From Orbicella franksi (lineage: Eukaryota): a DNA stretch of 64,000 bases. Made by a program: the position numbers and the translations under genes. The notes under the pieces are model-generated. The model saw only the letters and a list, made by a program, of their open reading frames with translations, was not told the origin of the DNA and ran no database searches. Below, one piece after another: positions 1,263 to 63,698 of this stretch. The DNA lies in assembly GCA_964199315.1 (NCBI GenBank), contig OZ116699.1:24428001-24492000 (forward strand), given 5' to 3'. How positions within the stretch are numbered: the stretch's first letter is position 1; the number at the start of each line of letters is the position of its first letter.

Positions 1263-1640
1263 ACTGACTAAGCTTGGTTAATAAGATGTTTACTATAATT
1301 TGCAAAGAAGAATAATTTAATTCTTTTAATGTAACTGGTTTGTACTAACTGACATTTTGCTTTGCTTTTTTTTTTTTTCTCATCAGGCTTTTTGGCACTT
1401 CCATAAATAAGTATTGTTAGAAGAAAACAATGATTTTGCATTTTAGTTTACAACTTTTTCACTGCAAAGCATTATCAGTCTAGATGCCAGTCTAGATGGG
1501 AAGATCTAGTCTGCTTTCAATATCAGTTTCAGCCAGTCAGATTTGTGAATTTGGTAGTTTCCAGTCCTTGTGAAACAGAGTCATATTATTATTAGCTTGT
1601 CATAGTTTGCCAGGAAATAGATTAAAGAATACAGAATCAA

Positions 1641-1671
1641 AAATAAATAAATAAATAAATAAATAAATAAA
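1641..1671. repeat. (AAAT)n microsatellite
   Basis: Direct reading of the sequence. Confidence 0.95.
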
Positions 1672-3144
1672 CAACATAATTTTATTGTTGTCCAGGTTGA
1701 TTGCGACATGTAAATGGTCAGTGAAGGGACACAAACATTAAATTTTCCACTTGACAATAACAGAAAGAAAGGCAGCTGCTTCCAGTTTGTAACACAGGAT
1801 TATAATAATTCACATTTCTAAGCACAAGCGAAGAAAAAGGGGTCCTTTTGATGTTTCATGGGCCTTTTTTTTTATTAGTGTGTTGTGTGAGTAAAACAAA
1901 CTGTCCAGGTGAATAAGACTGATATGTTTTCGAACAAATGCCATATTTTTGCAGAATTGTACAGTTGTAGAACAGTTTGTGTTGCAGTTTGTCAAAATAA
2001 GTACAGTAAATATCAAGCCCACTTTAGTTTTGTTCGAATTCCTCATGAAGGTCAAATCATTCAGAGCTTTCATCCTTTTCAACTGAAAATTCCTGTCTAA
2101 TAATATTATTGCTACATAAAGGAATCCTCTTGTTCCCCAACATCCCATACACCAGCCTAGAGAACTCTTAGTATGAAACACCTCGTAACTAAAAAAAGAT
2201 TAATGGAAAAAAGTTTTCTAGCAGTGGGCATCTTATGGTGAGGGAAGGGGGGGGGGGATAGGGCAGGATACCTAAAAACAAAGCTCAATGAAGAAATCAC
2301 AAAAAGTAACAGTATTGTTCGAGAATCACTAAAGCATGTTTGTTACAGTGATACAGGACTAAACGGGTGTACACTAATCGTAATTCACACTTGACCAAAC
2401 AAAGATTGCAATAACATAACCAACCCCCTAGCTACCCCCCTTTTACTCAGGAACTTTACAATGACTTGTTTATACATGTAACTGATCGTTTCACAACTAT
2501 ATACTTGTAGATTGGAAGAATCACTGTTAAGTGTGCATGCCTGGATTACCTCTCTTTGCTGCCAATTTGATGATAGGTTTGCTTCCCTTTAGTTTTGTAT
2601 TTGTCCGCTGCTAATCTTAAACTCCATTTCTGAAGGCATACAGGTTTAATTCCTTGATATTCAGTAACACACTTTAAGATAACATCAGCGCCAATATTTT
2701 CAAGAGCAAGATCACTCTTCTTTGAGTCTTGACAACCATAACATTCGTTGATGTTTTGAAGGGAAGCGACGCTACAATTTCTACACTTGCACGTAAAGAA
2801 CACAAACACTGTCATGGGATAATCATTTTGATCTACATTAAACGCATGAAGTTAAAATAATTTGAGAAAGTGAACGGACTTGACTGTTATTACGAAAGTA
2901 CATTAGTGCGAGATCGAAGGCGCGAAGATATAGTAAAGACGCGCCACGCGCTACAGTCTTACTAGTATCACTCTTCGACTTCTACATACTACCGAAACAG
3001 GTAGACCGCGAATTGAAAGATACGCGTGACAGTTGATTTTGGCGCTAAACGTCAACGACTTAGGTCACGTGGCTTTGTTTTTCAAACCAAAAACACGAAC
3101 TCGCGTGGTCACATTCCTAAGAGCGCGATAGAGCGAGTCAAAGA

Positions 3145-4212
3145 ATTGCGTTCTCCGTAAACAGCAAAGGGCGAAGTTACTACCGAGGAAAATCAATCGA
3201 TGAAAGTTTGAGAGGAAGTGTTATCGACTCCATTATGGCGGAAGGCGGAGATCCAGCCTCAGGGTTCTTTCCAGGAAAGTTTGCCGATGTTGCTAACCGC
3301 TTCAGAGTGTCAACTCAATTTGTTTCAAAGTTATGGCAAAATTTGTGCGCTACGGGTGACCATTTGCCTTCGAAGAAACTATCAGGTAATCCGTCACACC
3401 TCAAGCCTGAGGACATAGAACTGATGGAATTTCTCAAACAGGAGAAGCCTTCCCTTCCCTATAAATCGGTTGAAGATGTTCTTGAAAACTACAGTACTTT
3501 AGACGGCGGAACGCCCTTGACAGCGATCGGAAATGTTATCAGGAATAAGCTGCCAGAAGGACCTTACACTAGAAAACGACTGACGAAGGCATCTGCGGAA
3601 AAATTTACCCCTGTGAACACAGTTTACTGTCAACAGTTTCTAAATACTTTGAGTGCTTTGACACCAGAAAAACTTAAATTTTTCGATGAGGCTGGCGTTC
3701 ATAGTGGGACAGGAAACCCCGCTTATGGAAATTCTCTCAAAGGGGGAATAGCGGTTGAAATAATTTCTGGAAATAAAAAAGGAGCAAATGTAACGCTTAG
3801 CTTATTGTGTGGACTGGAAGGAGTACTGTATGCAAATACTGTGGAGGGCGCGTCGGATTCTACAAATTTTCTCAATTTCTTCGCTGAAGCTGGCCAAGCC
3901 ACAACCGCACTCGGTAATCCAGCAATTGAATTTGGTGATTATATCATTCTTGACAATTGCGCCACACATCGTTTCGAGACTGGGGACATTTTGCAAAGAT
4001 GGCTATTGCACATGGGAGCACAAATCGTTTACACTCCATCCCTTTCACCAGAATTCAACGTCGCAGAATTCGTTTTCAATCAATTGAAAACTGTTTTAAA
4101 GAAGGAGGAATTTCGATGCCTATTGCGTGAAAACGTTCATGTTGCAATCTTTGAGGCGTTGGAACTCATAACTACTGAGGACATGTTTGGTTTTTATAGC
4201 TTTATCTTGTAG
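3145..4212 (+). CDS. DD37E transposase (DDE_3/IS630-like); start codon possibly decayed (ATT at 3145)
   Basis: Motifs FFDEAG, IILDNCATH and YTPSLSPEFNVAEFVF, with 37 residues counted between the second D and E. The frame stays open upstream of the TTG at 3208 (IAFSVNSKGRSYYRGKSIDESLR). Confidence 0.88.
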   Translation: MAFSVNSKGRSYYRGKSIDESLRGSVIDSIMAEGGDPASGFFPGKFADVANRFRVSTQFVSKLWQNLCATGDHLPSKKLSGNPSHLKPEDIELMEFLKQEKPSLPYKSVEDVLENYSTLDGGTPLTAIGNVIRNKLPEGPYTRKRLTKASAEKFTPVNTVYCQQFLNTLSALTPEKLKFFDEAGVHSGTGNPAYGNSLKGGIAVEIISGNKKGANVTLSLLCGLEGVLYANTVEGASDSTNFLNFFAEAGQATTALGNPAIEFGDYIILDNCATHRFETGDILQRWLLHMGAQIVYTPSLSPEFNVAEFVFNQLKTVLKKEEFRCLLRENVHVAIFEALELITTEDMFGFYSFIL

Positions 4213-4770
4213 CTACGTCAGTTAAATTTTATTCGCTGTGTACTGAATCGAATTACTTTGTTAACTAAAGAACCTGTTGATCTGATATAAAAACAACACG
4301 AGTTTTTATTCATTTGTCTGATGAAAGTTTCAGTTTACATTTACTATTATTGCAGCAAGCATGTCGCGTAAAGTAACATTTGTACAAAACTGTAGAACTT
4401 CAACAATGGTTAATGTAAGTTACAATTTACGTTTCTTGAACAATATTAAAACTTTCAATGTTTTGTTCTAGTCCATTTGTAACTGAGAATCGCTGAAGTG
4501 GCAGCGCGTGCATGTTTGTTTATTTTCAGTATTTCGTTGTCTTTGTCGGCTGTAGACCTTATAAACAGAAAAATACAACATGAAATTACTCTTTTCCAAG
4601 GAAAAAATGTTTATCTTTCTTAGTATCGGAATTTTAAACGCATTAACTTAAAAATTTCAAGAGCAGTAAAATATGTACTCTTTAAAAGCACAACATGGTT
4701 CAAGCAGGTAATTGACAGCCAGACAGTTTGTCTCCTGCTGAATCGCACCGTATTTTGAAACGAAGACTAT

Positions 4771-6282
4771 TTAATTTGAGCTTAGTTCGGACAAATTTAG
4801 TAGAGCATTTGCAGCATCGTTAAGTTCCGTTCGCTCATTGTCATCATTTCCTTCACTCGTGGAAAGTGTCGCTCGGGTGATAGTCGCGCTGGGTTTAGTT
4901 TGCGTACCAAGCAAGTACAAGTTGCTTTCCTTCAGTGCAGCGGCCAGTTGTTGCTCTTCGTCTTCGACTGTTAATGGTTGGAGTTCTGTGCCAGTTGAAT
5001 AAGATTCGCTAAAAGTAAAGCTAAGCGGCGAGTCTACGGGTTTATATTGCAGAGGTTCAGGGGTTTCTGAAGGCCATTTAATGCCTTTTAATTCCCATAA
5101 AGTTCGCACGGGATTTCCTTGGTGTGGCACTTAGTAGCTTTCTAGCACTATCTTCTTGTCATATTCCGTCAGTGCCTCAAGTAAGCTGAGCCCAACTGGG
5201 GCAATTTTTCCTTTAAAATGCGATTCAAGTTTCTTTAAATCCATGTTAACCTGACGCCAGTTTTCAAACCCTTGAGTATTTAGGTAGCGTGGCTTGCACT
5301 CGTTAATCAATCGCGATCGCATAAGACTTGAGAATGAGTTTGATGTTTGATTCTTTAGTGCTATCTTCATTGACAAAGTGTTTTTCAGTTTCTCAAGACC
5401 TTTCTTTGCATTGTTCAGTTCGTTAACTGCGCGAGAAACAACATCTTTTTCATCTTTGTGTTTGCTTAAGTCACAACAAAATTCTGCTGATTGGCAAGGG
5501 TGAGCTTTGTACGGGCAGTTGACGCGATTGTGCCTTTCACGCCGATGACAGTTGGTACAAGGTTTCGAATAATCGATCCCCGCATGTTTGCCGTATCTAG
5601 CCATCAATCGCTGTACTTCCTCTTCTTTTTCCGCCACCTTTTTCCTCTCTTTTTTTACTTCTTCTTGTTTATCTGATATGAGGAGATCCAAGGGGGACAT
5701 ATAATGATTTGATCGTGGCCCACGATTTAGCGCGCTGTTTTCAGGCAAATCGCCTGTACTAACTCGGCGCTGTTGTTTTCGAGGTGGAGATAGATAGGTT
5801 TTGCTCGTTCCAACGTCAGGAATCAGATCATCTTCGGAAGAGGTGTTGGGTAGAGATTTCGGAGTAGACGAAAGAAGCAGATATTTTGAGCAGTTCTCGC
5901 CAAATTTGAGTTTTTTCTTCGAATCTCTGTCTGTTTCGCTTCCCTCTCTCATCTGCTGACGCTTCGCGGAAATTAACTCAGGTGTTGATTTAGGTTGCCA
6001 CGTGATTTTTATCTTTAAACGGCGAAATGTCGTTCCTTGCACTTTGGAAGCACAACGCTAAGCATCGTGGAAGGAGTCGTTCGGGCGTATGGTTACCAAC
6101 GTGTTCTCATCATCCGTGTACAGTACTCGTAGTTCCGTGTCAGGTATAAACTGTAAACTCTCAATTTTACCTCTAATTACTTGCATGAGATCTTCAAAAT
6201 TCTGTATTATACTTTCGGTGAAGATGACTTCACACCTGTCGACTCCTTCTGGGATGCTATAAAAAACTTTTAGCTGCAACAT
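4771..6282 (-). pseudogene. Transposon ORF2, ~503 codons: PB1-like N-terminus, CxxCx4-5Hx4C knuckle, coiled coil; two in-frame stops
   Basis: Track ORFs 6282-6058, 6042-5131 and 5130-4771 are one frame broken only by TAG 6058-6060 and TAA 5131-5133. Motifs YTDDENTLVTI and CTNCHRRERHNRVNC...CQSAEFCCDLSKH. Confidence 0.8.
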
Positions 6283-36133: not shown

Positions 36134-36926
36134 TCAGAAGTAATAATAAGGGGAGTATGTGTCCAATGGGACCCCATAGTATACTGGTACAAGAGGATTG
36201 AAGACATAAGGGAACGGCTGAATACTCGTGATGGCTTGCGGAACAAAGCATCGCTTGCTGCAATCACCTGGCGAGAGAAAATTTTGTTTTCGCTTAATGT
36301 AAAGGTGGTTTATTGATTTTTTAATCCTTTTTTCTTGCGTATCCAAATATCAACTTTACTGAAATTCTCAAGGATTGCATAAAATGAGCTATCTACTGAT
36401 CGATTGGGAAAATATAACTTGGCTCGAGGTCTCGACGTACACTGAGAGCGAGCGCCATGATGAGGGTTATAATATTCCAAGAGAATTAATTCAAGTAGTA
36501 GAAAGGTAAGAACTCTTTCAGACCAGGGTTGTTTGTTATTTGCTAATACTTTACCTCCACGTTTTCTGCAACAGTGACAGCAGTGGCAGCAACCGTGGCA
36601 GCAACCGTGGCAACAGCCATGACAACATTCTTGGCATTCCTTGGGGACTGCTTTGGGCTTCAAGGGCTTCAATTTAAACTCAGGAACTTTGCATTCACAG
36701 CAGCATGGCCACATACATGGCCACTGGCAAAAACCTTTTTTAGGTGGCTTCTTGCAGCATTGGCAACATGGATTGTCGACGCATGCTCCAAATGTGACTG
36801 GGAATGTCATTGAATCGCCACAACCACAGCAGCCGCATCCACAGCCTCCACAACAGTGATGGCAAATATGCGGGCATCCAAAGCCACAGCAACAATTGTG
36901 GCATCCACAAAATCCTGAACGCCGAG
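36134..36926 (-). CDS. Gene E: Cys/His-rich protein with WPCMWP module and Tyr/Pro tail (5' exons unresolved)
   Basis: Exon 36926-36555 (372 nt, phase 1-1; ARRSGFCGC...WPCMWPCCC...CCHGCCHGCCHGCCHCCHCCRKR). Terminal exon 36267-36134 (GDCSKRCFVPQ...PYYYF*). Confidence 0.8.
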
Positions 36927-39527
36927 CTATTGCAGGAAGATTAGGTAGCAAATTAGTGATAAATCTTTATATGCTACGAGCAAAAGTTCGAAAGGAAAGA
37001 AGTGCATAACCAGGTCAGCTTCGTACAAAGAATTACCATCTGCTATCAGATGTATAGCAGACTTATCCACAATACGAATAAAGAAGGGGATATTTCTTGT
37101 TGACGAAGCTGCCCTGTCTATGGTTTTGCCAAAGTAGAAGAAAGCAACCGAAAATGTGAATGGGCAGATCGCAACAAAATACTCACCAGCGTTAAAGAAG
37201 AGAAGCTGGCGAGTAGCAACCAGAGTCAGCGGTCTTCGATACAAGCGAGTTTTCTGAGTTGAGGTATTTCTCTTCCTACCTCCAGCAATGAATGATGAGG
37301 ACACATGTAAGCGACTGAAATATTTGCGCTCTAAGCACTGCTCACTCTTTGTGGTGTTACTAATCCGCATCGCAAAAGTGCTAAAAAACGCTTAAATATA
37401 GAAAATCCGGTTCAATTCCTAAATGCTTTGACTAAACGTAGGCAGGGCAGCTTTCGACAGCTTGTATTCGATTTAAAGCTCATTTGCTGTAATGTGATAA
37501 AATATTATGAGGTAGCCCTCTTGAGAAGATATCGAACGAGCATAATTTATTTTTACCTCCAGTTTAGTAATATTCGTCAATTTGTGCAATGACTGCGCCG
37601 AAAACTTTTATTTAAAACAACATAACCTAGGCACAGGACCAATACACTGTGAAATGATTATTTCGAGTTACTGGACATGACCAAGAACGTACATTTTTAA
37701 GTCATATGCCAGAGATTGCATCCAAATTTTAGCACATCTAATTCTATATCGCATTTCTCGAAATGATACGCGAAGATTATCTTTAAGCGAAAGAAGAATA
37801 AAAAGACCGTTGGCCTATCTAAAATGGTAGAAATCGGTCAGTACTCGCACTTTTTTTATAAGCGGATCTTGGCGCCTCTGCCCATATCATTTAATAACAT
37901 TTTCCACGAAAGAAAGAGCACGAAACTCGTTTTTAAACTTTCTGACGATCGAGAGAGGAAACCTTGTTTCATTTTCACGCTGACTGAGAAAGTAATTTAT
38001 TATGAACGAGAAGCGCTCGTGATCGACGAAACCACGTTTTTTACGTTTTTAACTTTGTAGACCCTTCTTACCCCCCTTCTGTCCTTCTTTTTTACATGAG
38101 GTAATTTCATTTAAACTTCAAAACGTAACAAAGTATAAAACGTGCAATAAAAAAGGCGTCCGGTGCGTTCGTCTGTGGCTGAATCTCAAATATTTCACTT
38201 CTTTTTGCTGACCAGGAGGAGTTTAGCTTTCTTTCCGCGAATTGAACAGTTTGAATTGACGTTCAAGCGTCTGAACTCGTAGCGGGAAACAATAATGGTA
38301 CTATAGAAATCAATGATCTTTCATATATTCTCTTGCAATTATGGTACTGTAGCGGTTTTTCTTAGTTTGCAGGATTACAAGCTAATAATTAAATTGAATT
38401 CTGTCAGAAACCATTATTATTTTCTATCCAATAAAAGGAGAGCTTAGTTAGATGAGACGTGCTTGAAATATATAAATGCTTAAGTCCATTTATTTAGGCA
38501 TTTAAGGGAAACAGCATCAGTTTAATTAATTATTAAGATGAAGTAAAGGGGTAAGAACAGTAGACACCACAAAGTTGATTTCTTTTATTTTCTAACATGC
38601 TGTCATGCAATATACTTGGTGTTCGACTGATAATGGCGTGGTGCAAAAATGTGTTCCAAAAGCAGTTTCTTTATTGGTACGTTTCTTTTGAGAATCCATG
38701 AAAACGCCGTCCTTTTGTCATTGATTGGTATCATTTTCTCATTTTGGCAATTTTTGTATTGTTACATTTTGTATCTTTTTACAAGGAAAATTACTTTGAG
38801 ACATATTGTCTCATGCTAGGAAGCGACGAAACAGGGCGTGCCTCTTGAAACAGCCCTCCGCAAGGAGATGACATTTTGCGTATAGTCATAGGACCTGAAA
38901 AAGTTAGAAAAAATTGTCAATTCAAATGATATCGGTTTAATGTTAAACAATCTTTTAAAATAAATAACGGAAATAAGATGTCCTCCATCTCTAAGGAAAA
39001 AATGTCCTCACTCGGACACGACAAGCCATTTCCAAAAATTCACAGCACTACGTTTGTCTAATTTGACAAAAAGTAAGTGTTGTTTATGGAAATGGAAGAA
39101 AGGATATATGTTTGTTAGCTCGAGCTCGCTTTGCAAATTTGATACTTTCCCTTAAAAAAATCCAAAATTCTAGACCCTACTGAATTCATTAGCTGCGTGG
39201 TTACAGTCTTTTTTTCAGAGGACGTTTTCTCTCGCTATGACAAGGTCAACCCAAAATGCATTCCTTCCTTCCTCATCGTTAAGTCAGACGGTCGACCTTA
39301 TAAAAACCTGAGATGCCTCAATTTTTTTTTTTTTTTTTTTTTGCTTTCGTCTCCGTAAGGTTTTTTGTTGTGTTTTCGTTGATTAAGACTTAAACTAACG
39401 CTGGCTCAAAACCATGACTCCGTTCAACCAAGGCTTAATTCACCTGGTCCATAAAAATTGTTCAGTTACTATCATTATCACTTTGCCTAACTAGTCCAGT
39501 GACGTAAAACAGAAAAACTGTACTCAC

Positions 39528-42281
39528 CTAGTAGAATGGTAAAGGGCCAAAGCCATGTCCATATCCTCCATATCCTCCATATCCTCCATATCCACCGAAA
39601 GGTCCGTATCCAAATGGTCCGTATCCACCGAAAGGTCCATAACCACCGAAACCATACGGACCAAAACCGCCGTAACCGTATCCAAAGCCATCACCGAATC
39701 CACCGCACCCGCAACGCTTTTCCACATCACCTCTCTTTAATGGACCTGCAAAGTGTAATAGATTGAATTGTGATTATCTGTAGTAAGTATATGCACTTCT
39801 CATTTTCACTTGCATTCATTTAAGGACACTTCTAGTTCCACGATAAATGTATTAAGATAAGCAAATATTTGCACCAGAAACATTTGCCTCACAGCTGTTT
39901 TTTGCGGCGAGTATGTGAACTGTTTGATCTGGATTTTTGACAAGATTGTTTCATTAGAAAGGTTTTAAAGTATGTATGTATCAATGGTAAGAATGAGTCA
40001 TGTGATTATGTCAAGAGAAACCCTAAGACTTAAAGGTAATTAAATGTCAAGTAAAACTGAACAACAGCTCGTCACAAAAATCCGAGTGACTAAACTTACG
40101 TATTGACTGAGGCTAATGACTAAGGACCTTCCCCCCTCAATAAATGGTTTCATCTTTAATAAAGCATAATAAAATGAGGAAAGGTAAATTGAAATCCGAG
40201 TGACTAAAATCAGTTATCTTAAACAGAAGTTTTCTTCCAGAACTTCGAATTCAAAGGAAGGACTTTACAAACTAACAGCAAAGATGTCAACTAACCTGCG
40301 CTCTTCTTTCCGCCGCAGCATCCATGGCAGTGTGGACAGTGGCACATCGGTTTGGGCTTGATTGGTGTGAATTTAAACTTAGGCGGGTCACATTCGCAGC
40401 AGCAGGGCCACATGCAAGGCCACTGACATTTGCCTTTCGGTGGCTTTTTCTGACAGCATTCGCAGCACGGATTGTTAACACATGCACCGAACGTGACGGG
40501 GAAGTTCAGATGCGGACAGCAACCGCATCCGCAGCCTCCGCAGCAATGGGGGCATTCAAAGCCGCCACAGCAGTTACCACAGCCGCAGCCTTCACCTGGT
40601 TCACCCCAGCAACCACAACAGCTACGTTTATCTTGGACTGTTCATGCAAGTAGTATCATGCAGCATGCAAAAATATAACATGCAAATTTATAAAGTTAGT
40701 CCATGCAAAATTTGCTGTTTTAAATATAATTTTCTATCCAGCTGCGACGCTGAAATTTAGCACAAAACTTTCATTTTTGATATGAGGGCTCTTTCTTCGG
40801 ACGTGTTTGCTGGGCGTATCAATTACACAGGGGGAGAAAATAATGACGACTTGGATTATCAATACAATTAGCTAGTTCCGTATGCGACGAACTACATGTA
40901 GGCATACGTTTCGATCCAGACATAAACATTTTAGAAACTTCAGTTAATCTTTCAAATGAGGTTACCCCTTTTTTAAAGCCACGATAAACGTGCCTTCTTA
41001 AGAACTTTGCAGTGTTAAAAGATTTCAGCTCGTGAATTATTCTTTTGTTCAAAACTCTAACCATTCAATTTCACTTTCAAATAAGAAACAAGGATCTTTT
41101 GATATTTCATAGTGAAGAAGTTTTGATCAGGAAATACAATATTTAGCCTTAACGTAAATAAAACACGTTTAAAAAATAAGTTCATCTCTTCTATATTGAT
41201 TAGTGCAGGTGGTTATCGACCTGTAATCTTTGAACGCTTCATTAAACAACAAGAAATTCCTTTTAACCCTTAAACTCCTAAACATCTGGTTACCTTTCAG
41301 CGCTCTGGTAATTTTAAGTCTTTGCTAAAGAAAGTCAAGACTTGATTTGTTTTGCCTCCTAAAATTCGAAGACACAACCGAATTGCAAAGCGCCAAAGTC
41401 CGATAAAATATTAATGATTTGGTCTTTGCGATTACGATTTTCCCTGAAACATTGTATTTAGAAGTCGAATATCCCGTTTAAAATGCTACGACCTCTAGAT
41501 ATTTATTAATTTTACGCTAAGAGAAATTTTCCGAGGATATTCATTAAGCGGGTCATTTATTACATACCTCGTAAAGAGCTAAACTGGCAATTCTTGTTTG
41601 GCCAGTTTCTCAACTTACCCCCTTAAGACTCAACATATATTTAATACATGGCTGTAAACAATGTTAAGATAGAAACAAATCATTATTTAAGACGAAAATG
41701 AATCTACCTTGTGCACTCTTGGAAGGCTTTTTGCTATCATCAACGGATCGCTTCTCGGGTTTGTCCTTTTCTTTGTCTGAATCGTCTATCACCACTCCTT
41801 TGATTTTTCCATTGCCGCTTCCCTGAAGCACGAGATGATCGGAGTCAAGATCTACACTTTCTTCCCCAGATGACTCTTGATCATTCTGTTGGTCGTTGAG
41901 ATCAGGTTCCTCCTCTTTGTCTTCCTCCTCATCTTCTTCCTTGTCTTCCTTCTTCTCATCGTCATCCTTCTTTTCCTCATCCTCCTTCTTTTCTTCGTCT
42001 TCCTTTTTCTCTTCACCTTCCTTCTCGTCTTCGTCGTCGTTTTTCACATCATCTTCTTTTTTCTCTTCATCAGATTTTTCTTCCTCCTTATCCGCCTCTT
42101 CTTCCTCATCATCTTTGGCCTTTTCATCGTCACTGGCCTCTTCACTTTTCTCCTTGGCCTCCATTACGTCCATAACATTTTCATTTTCTATCTTGTAAGA
42201 GGAGGCCACAGGAACGGCTGATGTTTGATAGACGACAACAAATAATGTGAAAACTACCAATAACAAGGTAGTTTTCATCAT
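39528..42281 (-). CDS. Gene G: 377-aa secreted precursor with acidic D/E/K block, Cys module and GGYG/GPF block
   Basis: Exons 42281-41708 (574 nt), 40637-40296 (342 nt) and 39745-39528 (218 nt) join in frame (1134 nt). Signal peptide MMKTTLLLVVFTLFVVVYQTSA; KR sites lie at the block borders. Confidence 0.82.
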
Positions 42282-44828
42282 CTTTCGCTGCTGTGTTTTT
42301 CTAAACCTTAGGCGCAACAAATAGAGGTATCGTAAACAACAACAATGTAACTAACTATCTTCGCCTCGATATATTGTCTCATAAACTGCAATTCCCGTAA
42401 AATGACTTGAAATTAGGTAAGATTTGAAATATTTACTACATGAATTTTGGTTGGCTAGGGTGTTCTATTGTGTGATTACTTCTTCTTTAATTCTATTGGA
42501 TGACAGGTCATTTACAAATTAGGTGACACCTCATTGTTTCCAAATTCGGAAACAAGGTCAAATTTCCGGTTGGTCACTTCTGTTAAACTTTGTCCAGTCT
42601 TTGCAGGCAAAGAGAGCCTAGAGTTTGAACTTACTTTTCTTTATTGTGCGCGGTTGAGAAAAAAAAAACATCAAATCTCAGCGTCCAGTACAATTTTGTT
42701 TACAAGTCACCCTTTTCCAATCGATACTTCTCATTAATTTTGCAAAACTCTCTTTTCTTGTCAATTCAAGCTTATAACAAGACGCGTGAATGCACCACCA
42801 ACTGCCAGCGTTTAGTTAGAAGAGGCTTTGATTTATCGCTTTGTGTCGAAAATTAATGAACTGTAGCAATTTTACTACAAAGATGGTTCAGAAAATTAAC
42901 AAACAGTGCTCGGTTAAAAATGGAGGCAGACTGCTGAATTACGAAAACCTTTTTTGAAATTACGGGAATAGTAATAATTTTATTCTTCTCGACGAAGAAG
43001 GCAAAATGTCGACGCAGGAAAAGATAAAACAACTGACAGGTTAAATGCATACCAGAGGTCGAAAGGGCATTTCTGCAAGAAATTGAAATACACCAATAGT
43101 TGAAAATACATGTAACATCGAGACACAGTTTTCCTTGAAAGGGAAGGTCAAAGGAATGTTTGTTGTGTGAATTAGTGGCTATATTTTATCCACACGTTTT
43201 AAGATAAACACATAAACAAACAAATCAACAGGAGTGTTTAAATTTAGTTGGAAGACAAGCAAAGCAATCAAAATCCATATTGCGTTCAAAATCAGTGCTG
43301 AGTCGTAAGAAAGAAAACTCATGAAAAAACTGAGACCCAACAGAGAATTTTATTTTGCATATGCATCGCAGTCGGGTAGGCGGATTTCACCGAGCCCAGA
43401 TACCAAATAATATACTGATCGGGCTGACCATTTGATAACAGATAATCCTCCCTTTGTCTGTTTAGTTCACATCTCAATTTAGGTGTTCATCAAGAAAACA
43501 TCACCCCGCTGAAAATCTTTGTAAAATAGGTTTCGCCGCAAGTGAAACTTTGCTAAGGCGAACGAGTAATCAGTCCCTGGTATCCTGTTGACAAACATTT
43601 CTGTCATAGTACCCAGGCTGTGAGGGAAATTGGAAAAATAAGGTTTTCCAGTTGATGAAATTAACCAAATTTTGTTCTTTTGCAGTGTAAAGGCCATTGT
43701 TAATCATAGAAGTATAAACTTCCTCTATCATATTGAAGCGTAGAAAGACAGAATGACCCTTGTTCTCGCCTGGGTAATGCTGGTACCGGTAGGAACAATT
43801 ACCGTAGCAACACCTGTTATGAACAGGCCTCATTAACTGTTTTTAGATACTGTTAATTAGAACGTTTCTCTCTTTTCACTTCTACTACAAAGCATTTGGC
43901 ACTGAAAATGCGCAGCAATAGTTTCCCAGTCTGTATAGCGAAAATAATTTTGCAATGTCTTTATAATGACTATTGAAGAAAAATACTTGGAAAGTATGAG
44001 CAATTGTATTACTCACACTTCTAAATTAGTTTAACAGTAATCATTTGTTGTTTGATTTTTGTGGAGCTGACGTAGAATCGTGGAATACGTTGCAAAGAAA
44101 AATGCAAATGAGCTGCATTTTGAAAACCGAAAACTACAGAATTGTAAATCACGACACCTACACCACAAGAGTCCAAAGGGTATTTCCCTCATATTTCTGA
44201 GCATGCGCTTTAATGTCTATTGTCAATTTCTGTAGTTGTTGACAGCCCTAAATGATGTTTTGACCCAAACAGGTCAGCGCTTATCGCGCCCATGTGCTAA
44301 TATTCGTCTGGTTTGAACCTCTCTTCTCCCAGCATTTGTGCAAATTCTCAAATTTGCTGAGTATCACGTAAGGGTTGCAAAACTTTAACTTCTAAGTTAC
44401 GTCTGATGGAAAGAAGTTAACTTTGGGCTCAACAATTTTACTTTTGTTTCTTTTGAAAGGAAATTATTTACAGACGTGAAGCTTTGTAAGAGCAGTTGTC
44501 AGTGTTTTTCCGAGTCTAGGATCGAAGTTGGGTTATCTTTGTCGTGAAGGTGGTATATACTCGTGGTTCATTACCAAGTTAGTAACAAAGCTCACATTGC
44601 CTTTTATCTAAAACGGTAGCTTACGAACATTTCTTTAGCAACTTCAGTAAGAGAAAGACGTTATTATGACAACAATTCAAATATTTATTTTGAACTGACA
44701 CTTCCACTACACATGGTCAATGTTACTTTCATCATAATATTGTGGCAATGACAGGGTTTTCTCGAGAGTCATTTTATTAATAAGTGAATTAGGCCGGTAA
44801 CGACATCGTTTCACTGGAATTTTCGTTT

Positions 44829-46114
44829 TTAATGATGCTGTGGCTTCACGTGCGCACCAGCGATAAGTGGGTCCACCGCATTTGGTGCTTGTGCCGAGGA
44901 CTCCGACTTCTTACAGCAGCAGTGGCAGCAGCAGGGGCAGCAATGGCAACAGTGGCAGCAGCATGGGCAACAACACTCGTGACAGCAACAGCAGCACGGC
45001 TCACAGCAGTGACAGCAGCAACAGCATGGCTCGCAACAGTGGCAGCAGCAGTCATGGCAGCAGTCACAACAGCAACATTTCTTGGATCCCTTTCCCCTTC
45101 TCCCCCCTTGCGGCTGACTGCCGTCTGCTTGCTGCATTATGGGTGCAACTGCCAAGATACCTGGGTTATCTGTCTCTTGGGATACAGCTGCGCGTCCTGA
45201 CTTGGAGCGTGGACTGCAATTGCAGTCGCATCGCTTAGTGCTGTTTCTGTGACTATCATTCTTTTCTGTGTCATCAGCATTCTTGCACTGACATTGCTCA
45301 GACTTGACACCTTTCTCCGTTTTACTCGCTGACGGACAATCGCAGCTCTTTTTGTCGTCGCTCTGACATTTTTTCATATCCTGCTTGGAACAATCGCAGT
45401 TTTCTTGTTGTATCCTCTGTTGTTCGTCTGCTGGTATTTCACAGGTGCATTTATTTGCATCTGCCTCCTTCTGTTCGTCTACAGCAAAAAATTATTCAAA
45501 TTAAGCGCACTTACTGACGAACTGTTTACAGATTAGGTCGTTTGATTATTACCAGTAAGTCTTTGTCGGACATGTTGGTCTTCTTTGTCATTAACACATG
45601 CCAGTTCTTGACCCAATATATCATATATTAATTACTTAAAAACAATGGGTTTTTTTGTGACCAAATTTTGTAAGAGATCAAGAAAACTTGAAAAGGCGTG
45701 AAACGGACGTTAGCTTAAAAATAAACATTTCCTTTTTCCATTATAATAGCGCTTTTAAGTTTATCTCAGTGGATTGCCCACCTCTTCTAGTTTGAAGTTG
45801 TTTGTTTGCTTGATATTGGTATACAATTTTTCTGCACTGTCTACACTGTCTGTCTTATTTTTGTTTTTAAATTAGCGCAATTAGAAAAAATAACACCTTT
45901 AAAACAACATCAAAACATTAATCATTGCGAGTAATCAGTTGATGAAGCCGAAGTTTTTTCAACAAAGACAAACTCGAATAATTCGTAAACAAATTCGTTT
46001 CACTCCCGCTGTGACGAAAGAAATCTTACCATGCTTCGATTTGATTGATTTTGCTCCCACCAGTAAAGAAACACAGCTTAGCAAAGCAAGCCAAACAAGC
46101 AATGTCGCCTTCAT
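44829..46114 (-). CDS. Gene H: 262-aa secreted protein with CxC spacers and a very dense Cys/His tail
   Basis: Exons 46114-46030, 45606-45553 and 45478-44829 (789 nt in frame). Signal MKATLLVWLALLSCVSLLVGA; the tail has 39 Cys in 55 aa. Confidence 0.82.
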
Positions 46115-61706: not shown

Positions 61707-63698
61707 TCAGTGCACCCTTAAAGGTCCACCTCGTACCAGTGAGAATGCGCGGCCGTTGTAAGGCCCACTAAAATAAGGGCACGGAGTAAACATGTAGAGA
61801 TAGACTGGTCTGCTGAAGAAGGACGGTGACAAGGGGCCTTGAGATCGCTTACAGTGACAGCAATGGCAACAGCATGGGCAACAGTGGCAGCAGTGGCAGC
61901 AGTGGCAACAGTGGCAGCAAGGACAGCAGTGATGATGATGATGATGTATATGATGACAACACTGATGACAACATGGGGTAGGACAGCAAGGGCAACAGCA
62001 CGGAGAGCAGCATGGCTCCTCCGGTTTCTTCTTTGGTTCTTCTTCCGCTGCACCAGGAATAGGACACCAGCAACCTAAGAAAACAGGATTTAATGGATAA
62101 ACAAATACGCTGCATAAATGTGCAACTTATTGCGATTTCTGTGCAGGGCCTTCTTATAATATCTAACTTTCCATCGCAAAGACCTATGATGTCAATGTGG
62201 ATTGACATTCGGTTTAAGCCTTAGGGGAACAATTCTCCTTTAGAATTCATGGTCCTTTCAAAAGCTGAAAACAAACATTTCTGGAAAAGGTTCCTCAGCC
62301 GATGCATTTATGCAGTACACGTTCATCTTGCAGTAATTTGAAAGATGGACAATGTTATTCCACCACAATTTTTTAATCAGTAATTATTATTTATGAGCCC
62401 TTTTTCCACCTTTATGAAGAAGACTGTTTTTTTTTTTCTTCACATTCGGTGCAACGCAATTTTTGTCTATTTCCAAGATTACTTCTTAGCTTATGAGCAG
62501 CCTGGACTTTTTTGCTGCGCTCTAGTGTCTAAAAATGCCTTTCTGTTGTAATGTACTTTAGCGTGGTCTGTACTCTTATCGACAACGATACGTGTCATCA
62601 CAGTCCACAACAAAATTTTGACCACTGTGATGACGCGTATCCGGCTGTCGATAAGAGTACAGACCACCCTAAACCACATTTTGATTTGTTTTTTACCACC
62701 ATATAAACGTCAAAGAAAATGGGTTTTTTTTTTCAGAGCGAGAGCTGAAAAAGGCATTGCGTGACACATCGACGTGAGCAGCGTTATCTGGACTCTTATC
62801 AACAACGGCAAATTAGCCAATCAGATCGCGAGATTCGTAGCAATTGTGGAAAAATATATTTTTAACTTTTTTTAGTCAGGAATTTTAACAATTGAACAGA
62901 AAACAACGCATGAACAGCATGAACAGCTTTAGAAAACGCTTTGTTTACTAAAATATCACACAATTCGAAAAGGCTATTTCATTTTTACAGCTTTACGCAA
63001 CCTAACGTTATCTAAAGGTTCAATATCACGCTGGTATAACCTCTTCCCTTGTCACGTCAAGGACCATCGACTCTATTCGGTTAGCTATCCTATCTAAGAT
63101 TTTATCAATTTCATGCCGCATGCATTCAGTTCGTCGTTAAAGCTTGGTTTACACGTATGACGTACTCCGGAATAAGCATAAGCAAACGTGCAAGCACAAG
63201 CGCAAGTGTGTTCACACTTGCAATAAGCATAAGCACAAGGTGACGGTGTCTAAATTTTGAATAGCATTGTGCTTATGCTTGTGTCGTACGCGCAAACCAG
63301 CTAATAACGGCTAGCGAGAGGCATGATAAAGGCACGATAAAGTGGTTGCGTTATCCCGGTTCACACAGGCGCCACGGCAACCGTAAGCACAAGAAGAAAA
63401 AGAGACTTTCTTCTCTTGTGATTAAGTTGATGCTTGCACTTGTGCTTTTGTCGCCCGCTTTACAAGTGACATTTTTTTTGCTTATGCTTGAGCTTATGCT
63501 TATGCTTTTGGTAATACGTACAAACTAAGCTTAACAGTTGAACTGAGTTTCTAAGTCGTCATGCACAGTGTGCACAATCAGTGGTCATGCGGGTAGAAAT
63601 TGACAAACCTCCATCGCATTCATGGTGACAACAGTCACATCCACATTGTGGCATACAGCCACCAACACATGGCTGACAACCATGGCAAATGTGGCATC
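61707..63698 (-). CDS. Gene J (5'-incomplete): Cys/His-rich protein with a His run and GPLRVH C-terminus
   Basis: Exon 63698-63609 (90 nt, phase 1-1; GCHICHGCQPCVGGCMPQCGCDCCHHEC). Terminal exon 62074-61707 (GCWCPIP...CCHQCCHHIHHHHHHCCPCCHCCHCCHCCHCC...KR...GGPLRVH*). The frame is not listed in the ORF track. Confidence 0.75.
62563..62667. repeat. ~105-bp hairpin repeat in the gene J intron
   Basis: gtggtctgtactcttatcgaca pairs with tgtcgataagagtacagaccac. Confidence 0.8.
63160..63530. repeat. Palindromic MITE-like repeat rich in gcataagcacaagc / gcttatgcttgtg
   Basis: Inverted arms built from short ataagc/gcttat repeats. Confidence 0.55.

Follow-up and report, generated by a model that had tools for sequence, protein, structure and literature searches.

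In the 64,000-nucleotide stretch of the Orbicella franksi genome analyzed here (hereafter the window), the minus strand from position 42281 to ~34400 is occupied by one complex gene in which a single leader exon is joined to one of several alternative terminal cassettes, of which there are at least three (A, B, and C). A three-block, 377-aa protein that had been predicted from sequence at the start of this gene is real and expressed, and constitutes isoform A of the larger gene. The encoded proteins are best described as a new hexacoral family of secreted Cys-rich and aromatic-rich proteins, which are probably processed by convertases and are undescribed in the literature. The explanation that best accounts for the locus as a whole, and that is favored here with moderate confidence, is a one-leader, multi-cassette gene whose precursors would be cut by a convertase and whose products would form a cross-linkable structural matrix.

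Structure and Transcription of Isoform A

The original prediction held that three open reading frame (ORF) pieces on the minus strand are joined by phase-1 splices into one 377-aa frame that encodes a single three-block precursor. When joined, the three coding exons (Table 1) make up 1134 nt of open frame, with 377 codons and a stop codon, and both coding introns are GT..AG introns in phase 1. RNA evidence came from runs X23, X24, and X21, whose raw polyA reads were examined over window positions 36401-42400, and from assembled contigs of run X2. The junction 41708->40637 is spanned by 155 (X23) and 114 (X24) reads and the junction 40296->39745 by 99 (X23) and 76 (X24), which confirms the predicted joins, and read depth falls to ~0-2 in the introns compared with ~100-650 on the exons. 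A third junction, 39528->38894 (147 reads in X23 and 78 in X24), adds an exon of 3′ untranslated region (UTR); the stop codon of exon 3 directly adjoins the splice donor (TAG/gtgagt), and the same 3′ UTR splice is present in RNA contigs of a relative (L001-L005). At the other end, the 5′ UTR of the leader exon reaches upstream to below position 42400.

The block composition described for the 377-aa frame likewise matches the sequence. A classical signal peptide, with a predicted cut between MMKTTLLLVVFTLFVVVYQTSA and VP, is followed by ~156 aa of Glu, Asp, and Lys, by KPEKR, a short basic spacer, and QDKR, by the Cys-rich module, by GPLKRGDVEKR, and finally by the tail. The module contains 30 Cys in 112 aa, and the 61-aa tail is composed of 30 Gly, 11 Tyr, 9 Phe, and 6 Pro among its residues, with no Lys or Arg. 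The Gly-Tyr tail is polymorphic: a 9-nt insertion encoding an extra GYG is found after position 39557 in 129 of 192 X23 reads and 53 of 96 X24 reads, and loose read ends at 39558 and 39590 suggest that a further tail allele, more divergent and missing from the assembly, also exists.

In run X2, a contig containing intron 1 has a depth of 46.6, compared with 1632-5062 for contigs across spliced junctions; because it lies so far below the spliced contigs, it is best read as pre-mRNA and not as a separate transcript. The retention of intron 1 in the relative's contigs L001-L005 had raised the possibility that exon 1 is not joined to exon 2, which is rejected because the spliced junction is far deeper in the raw reads. 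Transcripts assigning the three exons to separate genes were looked for in the raw reads and were not found, so that the gene model stands. As for the single three-block precursor, one spliced mRNA and one reading frame do exist, but they represent only isoform A of a multi-cassette gene and include an additional 3′ UTR exon.

A Shared Leader Exon and Alternative Cassettes

The donor at 41708 joins three acceptors in raw RNA reads, at 40637 (cassette A), 36926 (cassette B), and 35334 (cassette C). The junction to cassette B is supported by 16 (X23) and 3 (X24) reads and by one Logan contig of run X2, and the junction to cassette C by 150 X23 reads and one X2 contig, all of which continue beyond 41708 with sequence mapping uniquely to 35305-35334. 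Joined to the leader, cassette B yields an open isoform of 359 aa and cassette C one of 403 aa, each with its own stop codon. Judged by junction counts, cassette C is used about as often as cassette A, while the usage of cassette B is ~10-fold lower. Depth in the raw reads is ~660 on the leader and ~180 on cassette A, as expected of a shared first exon.

The downstream joins within these cassettes find parallels in other species. The donor of the cassette B tail lies 5 nt past the stop codon, and the spliced form of this tail is present in the orthologue P0012; the module-tail join of cassette C is matched by RefSeq proteins of Acropora and Montipora, and a leader joined to a C-type module is found in the RefSeq orthologues P0036, P0041, and P0052. 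AATAAA signals lie 3′ of cassettes A and B, and a hexamer of the ATTAAA/AATAAA type lies 3′ of cassette C, with the transcript end observed for A alone. In all three cassettes the stop codon is located at, or at most ~20 nt from, a splice donor (39528, ~36129, and ~34398), which implies that each mRNA has an intron at the very start of its 3′ UTR; this intron is read-supported for A and predicted from sequence for B and C.

When the entire 497-Mb assembly was searched in six frames, just one leader exon and exactly four Cys modules were recovered, all of them within the window, and inspection of the sequence between the cassettes revealed no signal-peptide exon. On these grounds, separate first exons for cassettes B and C are rejected. 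The resulting organization recalls the CALCA gene, in which common 5′ exons are combined with alternative sets of terminal exons. In both cases, one promoter and one signal/pro exon are combined with alternative 3′ cassettes that have their own stop codon and poly(A) site, giving rise to different secreted products. The coral gene has the two features that define such an organization, namely one 5′ exon joined in mRNA to at least two mutually exclusive sets of 3′ exons, and a stop codon and poly(A) signal belonging to each cassette. It differs from CALCA in that its cassettes are at least three paralogous three-exon units derived from tandem duplication, and in that its products are large and Cys-rich rather than short hormones.

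Table 1. Positions of the leader exon and of the cassette exons within the window.
Feature	Position	Strand	Description	Basis
Shared leader exon, coding part	41708..42281	(-)	Signal peptide aa 1-22, acidic pro-region, KPEKR, short basic spacer; ends in phase 1	
Cassette A exon 2	40296..40637	(-)	VQDKR site, then Cys-rich 'WPCMWPCCC' module; phase 1 at both ends	
Cassette A exon 3	39528..39745	(-)	GPLKRGDVEKR, then 61-aa Gly/Tyr/Phe/Pro tail; last codon is the TAG stop	
Cassette A exon 4 (3′ UTR)	38571..38894	(-)	AATAAA at 38589-38584; transcript ends near 38571-38600	
Cassette B module exon	36555..36926	(-)	ARR, Cys module with CCHGCCHGCC extension, RKRG; phase 1 at both ends	
Cassette B tail exon, coding part	36134..36267	(-)	GDCSKR, 38-aa Tyr/Pro/Phe tail ending in YSPYYYF	Sequence and frame
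Cassette C module exon	34840..35334	(-)	EKR, CGCG-rich repeats, Cys module, LRRT; phase 1 at both ends	
Cassette C tail exon, coding part	34416..34558	(-)	AKRGPVKR, 39-aa Tyr/Pro/Phe tail ending in PFPRQF	Sequence and frame
Cassette D module exon	27476..27855	(-)	Phase-1 acceptor, GKRHWGCGG...; broken by two frameshifts and an in-frame stop	
Cassette D tail exon	~26897-27070	(-)		

Putative Processing Sites and Predicted Products

Each block border of the three isoforms is marked by a pair of basic residues (KR or RR), and the same holds for the proteins of Porites, Acropora, Montipora, Nematostella, and Actinia. KPEKR lies in the leader, the module is preceded by QDKR, QARR, or QEKR, and the tail is preceded by a short spacer with a pair on either side; the positions of these pairs are kept across cassettes and out to Actinia and Nematostella, while the flanking residues vary. 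In isoform A, all 4 Arg residues belong to such pairs (each a KR at a block border, in a protein with 44 Lys), and the corresponding counts are 5 of 6 in isoform B and 6 of 7 in isoform C. That every Arg of isoform A lies in a border KR pair supports convertase processing. The convertase sites suggested in the original prediction thus gain credibility from this conservation, and the coral proteins possess the dibasic sites at domain borders that characterize proprotein-convertase substrates.

The blocks delimited by these sites differ markedly in composition. The pro-region contains 43 Glu, 30 Asp, and 27 Lys in 156 aa and is thus a mixed polyampholyte with a net charge of ~-45. The modules measure 112-159 aa, contain 30-38 cysteines (23-32% Cys), and carry charges from +3.6 to -0.1, and the tails, at 38-61 aa, carry zero or almost zero charge.

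Conservation, Taxonomic Range, and Expression

Three other coral genomes (L006, from the Tara coral metagenomes, L011, and L012) show the same arrangement on one strand and with a single leader, in the order hyper-Cys gene, leader, A module, A tail, B module, and C module. Measured pairwise against these corals, where dS is ~0.9-1.8, the ratio of nonsynonymous to synonymous substitution (dN/dS) lies between 0.08 and 0.15 in the leader, between 0.02 and 0.14 in the modules, and between 0.08 and 0.16 in the A tail, the leader and tail values being rough since they derive from alignments of low-complexity sequence. Such low ratios indicate that the leader, the modules, and the A tail are constrained as coding sequence by purifying selection.

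Among 1.84 billion representative proteins searched exhaustively with HMMER, only 20 relatives of the A module were recovered, and all of those that are named come from stony corals or sea anemones. A full-length A-type orthologue of 350 aa with the same three blocks is found in Porites lobata (P0053), proteins combining the leader with a C-type module are found in Acropora muricata, A. palmata, A. millepora, and Montipora foliosa (as 'isoform X2-X4'), and LOC116617360 of Nematostella vectensis ('isoform X5') follows the same three-block plan. Homology between Nematostella and corals is recognizable in the signal peptide and at the beginning of the pro-region, and the module is ~66% identical between coral and anemone, with the core …NCCGGF…FPxxFGAxVNNPxCxCC…CxWPCMWPCCCxCxPPKFxFKPLKPxP…CHCP. 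The isoform naming used by NCBI, together with the sequences of the leader-plus-C proteins, suggests that the Acropora and Nematostella isoforms differ by cassette, while leaderless NCBI models also exist for some cassettes (P0005, P0027, and P0028). Judging from these sequences, the family is shared by stony corals and sea anemones, and its isoforms appear to be modeled already in RefSeq.

Outside this set of relatives, no match was obtained for any of the three isoform A exons in Pfam, even at E<=1. Searches with the module returned a best score of 0.76 and no relative in the ESM Atlas feature search and no match in a profile search of the PDB, and the module sequence was not found in the supplements of the Nematostella matrisome. 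No description of the family was found in the literature, where the sole match was the A. digitifera orthologue LOC107332322, which a study on A. palmata lists as the hub of a 109-gene co-expression (WGCNA) module (PMC10212133). Terms enriched in this set of genes are those for extracellular region, collagen, and hemidesmosome (PMC10212133), an enrichment that fits a matrix role and does not point to one cell type.

Expression of the O. franksi gene reaches ~240 reads per million in X23 and ranges over ~100-240 across X23 and X24, whereas in X21, a third polyA run with the same species label, 1 read in ~10 million falls on the gene. This difference between a silent and two highly expressing runs indicates that expression depends strongly on stage, tissue, or condition.

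A Model for Secreted, Cross-Linkable Products

A single promoter and a single leader exon, which codes for the signal peptide and for ~170 aa of acidic pro-region, serve the alternative terminal cassettes A, B, or C. Each cassette is made up of a module exon, an aromatic-tail exon, and a 3′ UTR exon, the last of these being predicted from sequence in B and C, and each has its own poly(A) signal. In the proposed mechanism, a Kex2/furin-type convertase would cut the precursor at the conserved KR/RR pairs in the secretory pathway, removing the shared acidic pro-region, which may act as a solubilizing or sorting pro-domain, and releasing a mildly basic Cys module of ~110-160 aa together with an uncharged Gly/Tyr/Phe/Pro tail of 38-61 aa. 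More conjecturally, the module might cross-link through disulfides and the aromatic residues of the tail might drive its self-association, yielding an insoluble matrix that could be extracellular or located within an organelle. Dityrosine or DOPA crosslinks in the tail, as suggested in the original prediction, are likewise conjectural.

The closest precedent for such a precursor is found among nematocyst proteins. Nematocyst proteins are described as carrying a propeptide that terminates in KR, a rule that the dibasic layout of the coral precursors matches; in Hydra Cnidoin, one example, such a propeptide of 90 aa follows the signal peptide, the remainder comprises Cys-rich domains for cross-linking and a disordered region rich in Gly, and the protein is built into a disulfide-linked polymer (PMC4321713). 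The coral proteins share with Cnidoin, the minicollagens, and NOWA a signal peptide, a long propeptide ending in Lys-Arg, Cys-rich parts, and a low-complexity Gly-rich region; the basic ends of the propeptide, KPEKR and QDKR, QARR, or QEKR before the module, are present in all isoforms and orthologues. They differ from minicollagens in having no collagen triplets and in the distinct sequence of the 'WPCMWPCCC' module, and from Cnidoin in the composition of the tail, which is Gly/Tyr/Phe/Pro in the coral family and Gly/Gln/Met in Cnidoin. Relatives of the coral family are, moreover, found just in stony corals and sea anemones, and the link to the cnidocyst is one of analogy. On the basis of the likeness to Cnidoin, the cnidocyst may be named, speculatively, as the leading candidate compartment, and the spirocyst, being hexacoral-specific, would match the phyletic range of the family. 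Carried further, this leads to the idea of a hexacoral-specific material system in which the acidic pro-domain delivers interchangeable module and tail pairs to the spirocyst or another cnidocyst, with the choice of isoform tuning mechanics or adhesion. This extension is put forward tentatively and is on the whole doubtful; if true, it would place a two-component chemistry like that of the hair matrix on a single, alternatively spliced precursor.

The comparison with hair is suggested by composition. The Actinia homologue has been named 'keratin-associated protein 5-5-like' by NCBI, and the coral proteins resemble the ultra-high-sulfur and high-Gly-Tyr classes of mammalian keratin-associated proteins in their segments packed with CC and CxC and in their GGY/GYG repeats. 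Unlike keratin-associated proteins, however, the coral proteins are secreted, have a pro-region, and carry both chemistries on one precursor, and no match at E<=1 to the Pfam keratin-associated families, whether high-sulfur or Gly-Tyr, was obtained with the three exons. The resemblance reflects convergence in composition and not homology, and despite the NCBI name the coral proteins do not belong to this class.

Several points weigh against the one-leader, cross-linkable matrix interpretation. With regard to the gene, the count for the junction between exon 1 and cassette C comes from loose read ends at 41708 and not from aligned junctions, its acceptor lying outside positions 36401-42400, the tail splices of cassettes B and C in O. 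franksi rest on sequence and frame, and depth on the leader is ~3.5 times that on cassette A, whereas the counted junctions predict a ratio of only ~2, an excess to which further splice partners or the mapping of low-complexity reads may contribute. With regard to the product, AlphaFold2 applied to a 17-sequence module alignment gave no confident fold (predicted local distance difference test score, pLDDT, 43.6; predicted template modeling score, pTM, 0.20), a pattern search for the minicollagen cysteine-rich domain CX3CX3CX3CX3CC found no occurrence in isoforms A, B, or C, and cleavage, disulfide cross-linking, and insolubility are predictions.

Alternative Functions Considered

The original prediction had likened the acidic block to coral acid-rich proteins (CARPs), and a biomineralization protein would be the corresponding reading of the whole, with the acidic block as a Ca-binding, CARP-like polyelectrolyte and the Cys-rich and Gly-Tyr parts as a framework of the skeletal matrix. 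The pro-region is indeed very acidic, the species is a calcifying coral, and one Acropora orthologue bears the NCBI name 'histidine-rich calcium-binding protein-like', a name based on composition only. Both CARPs (or SAARPs) and galaxins are, like the family described here, secreted coral proteins, with acidic stretches in the former and many di-Cys motifs in the latter; galaxin-like proteins also have an acidic N-terminus. The likeness does not hold up, however. The acidic block is a Lys-interrupted Glu/Asp leader ending in KR, in which Glu exceeds Asp rather than being Asp-dominated as in CARPs. The conserved KR splits it from the cargo, and it is common to all isoforms, serving several cargos in the manner of a pro-domain. 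Pfam, word-based, and exhaustive HMMER searches revealed no sequence relationship to CARPs, SAARPs, or galaxins, returning orthologues that are unnamed or 'uncharacterized', and the exhaustive search gave no relative with a skeletal-matrix name. The family, including the homologous signal peptide and acidic leader, is also found in the non-calcifying Nematostella and Actinia, and its presence in anemones indicates that it predates calcification. CARP/SAARP membership is rejected on the combined grounds of homology, composition, and distribution, and a role in biomineralization is regarded as improbable.

The layout of signal peptide, anionic pro-region, dibasic site, and Cys-rich part is equally that of antimicrobial or defense peptide precursors such as those of damicornin, defensins, and arminin, in which an anionic pro-piece neutralizes a cationic Cys-rich peptide, and the tail could be compared with nematode NLP/CNC peptides. 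In the A. palmata study, the co-expression module of the orthologue is up in disease-exposed corals, but it is also up in inoculated, visually healthy corals and is enriched for collagen and adhesion rather than immune terms (PMC10212133). The size, Cys content, and weakly basic character of the modules fit poorly with cationic effectors, as do tails without positive charge, and ~66% identity between coral and anemone modules is unusual among fast-evolving immune effectors. A defense function consequently has little probability.

A prohormone or neuropeptide precursor, whose alternative 3′ cassettes would encode different signaling peptides as in calcitonin and calcitonin gene-related peptide, would account for the CALCA-like plan of common signal/pro exons and alternative terminal exons with their own poly(A) sites, and for the paired dibasic sites that flank short spacers. 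This reading is very improbable, given that the products are long and either Cys-packed or low-complexity and aromatic, that a scan of the isoform sequences found no Gly-Lys-Arg amidation signal at product ends, and that expression in X23 is very high. That the three exons, or cassettes B and C, are separate genes whose joined frame is coincidental is scarcely credible: in the relative's contigs L001-L005, exon 2 is preceded by intron 1 and exon 1 is never present, and some NCBI cassette models have no leader, but hundreds of raw reads cross the junctions, the depth of the intron-1 contig marks it as pre-mRNA, and neither a second leader in the genome nor a signal-peptide exon between cassettes was found.

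Cassette D and the Surrounding Window

The fourth Cys module of the assembly belongs to cassette D, which was recovered as three tblastn pieces in three different frames. Besides its frameshifts and in-frame stop, it shows Cys-to-Arg changes with loss of conserved Cys (WPCMWPRCC), and intact D-type orthologues are found in Oculina (P0005) and Pocillopora (P0028). Its sequence suggests that it is probably a decaying cassette in this assembly. Between cassettes C and D lies a retroelement (28642-32236, plus strand) whose gag, reverse-transcriptase, and integrase-like ORFs are spread over several frames; judging by its position, this gag-pol element may have helped to cut cassette D off from the gene.

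Further along the minus strand, a 198-aa ORF (22442-23038) has its own hydrophobic N-terminus and a C-terminus reading CCCPCGCGGCC…YTPPKFKMRPLKSKTKCGCPH…GRKRR. It keeps just the second half of the module motif and scores under the profile threshold, and its sequence identifies it as a putative distant paralogue with its own leader. A silk-like Gly/Ala repeat protein (18857-21745, minus strand) contains a Cys patch (…CMMPPCCPCCC…) before its repeats, which suggests that the window holds a cluster of secreted proteins mixing Cys-rich and low-complexity parts. Upstream of the leader, hyper-Cys exons composed of CCHDCC/CCEPCC units are located at 44832-45491, 54245-54949, and 61710-62126 (minus strand). 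A hyper-Cys gene also lies directly upstream of the leader in the three other coral genomes (L006, L011, and L012), and the CCHGCC extension of cassette B resembles these upstream units.

Significance

These results define a conserved and highly expressed family of secreted hexacoral proteins that has no Pfam domain, solved relative, or literature of its own, and which databases partly mis-model as separate leaderless genes. The design of the gene clearly illustrates how a cluster of genes can become one alternatively spliced gene through tandem duplication and the loss of 5′ exons. For coral biology, a tempting but unsupported candidate for biomineralization is removed. The family also offers a testable system for the sorting and processing of structural cargo in cnidarians and for the making of disulfide- and aromatic-rich materials.

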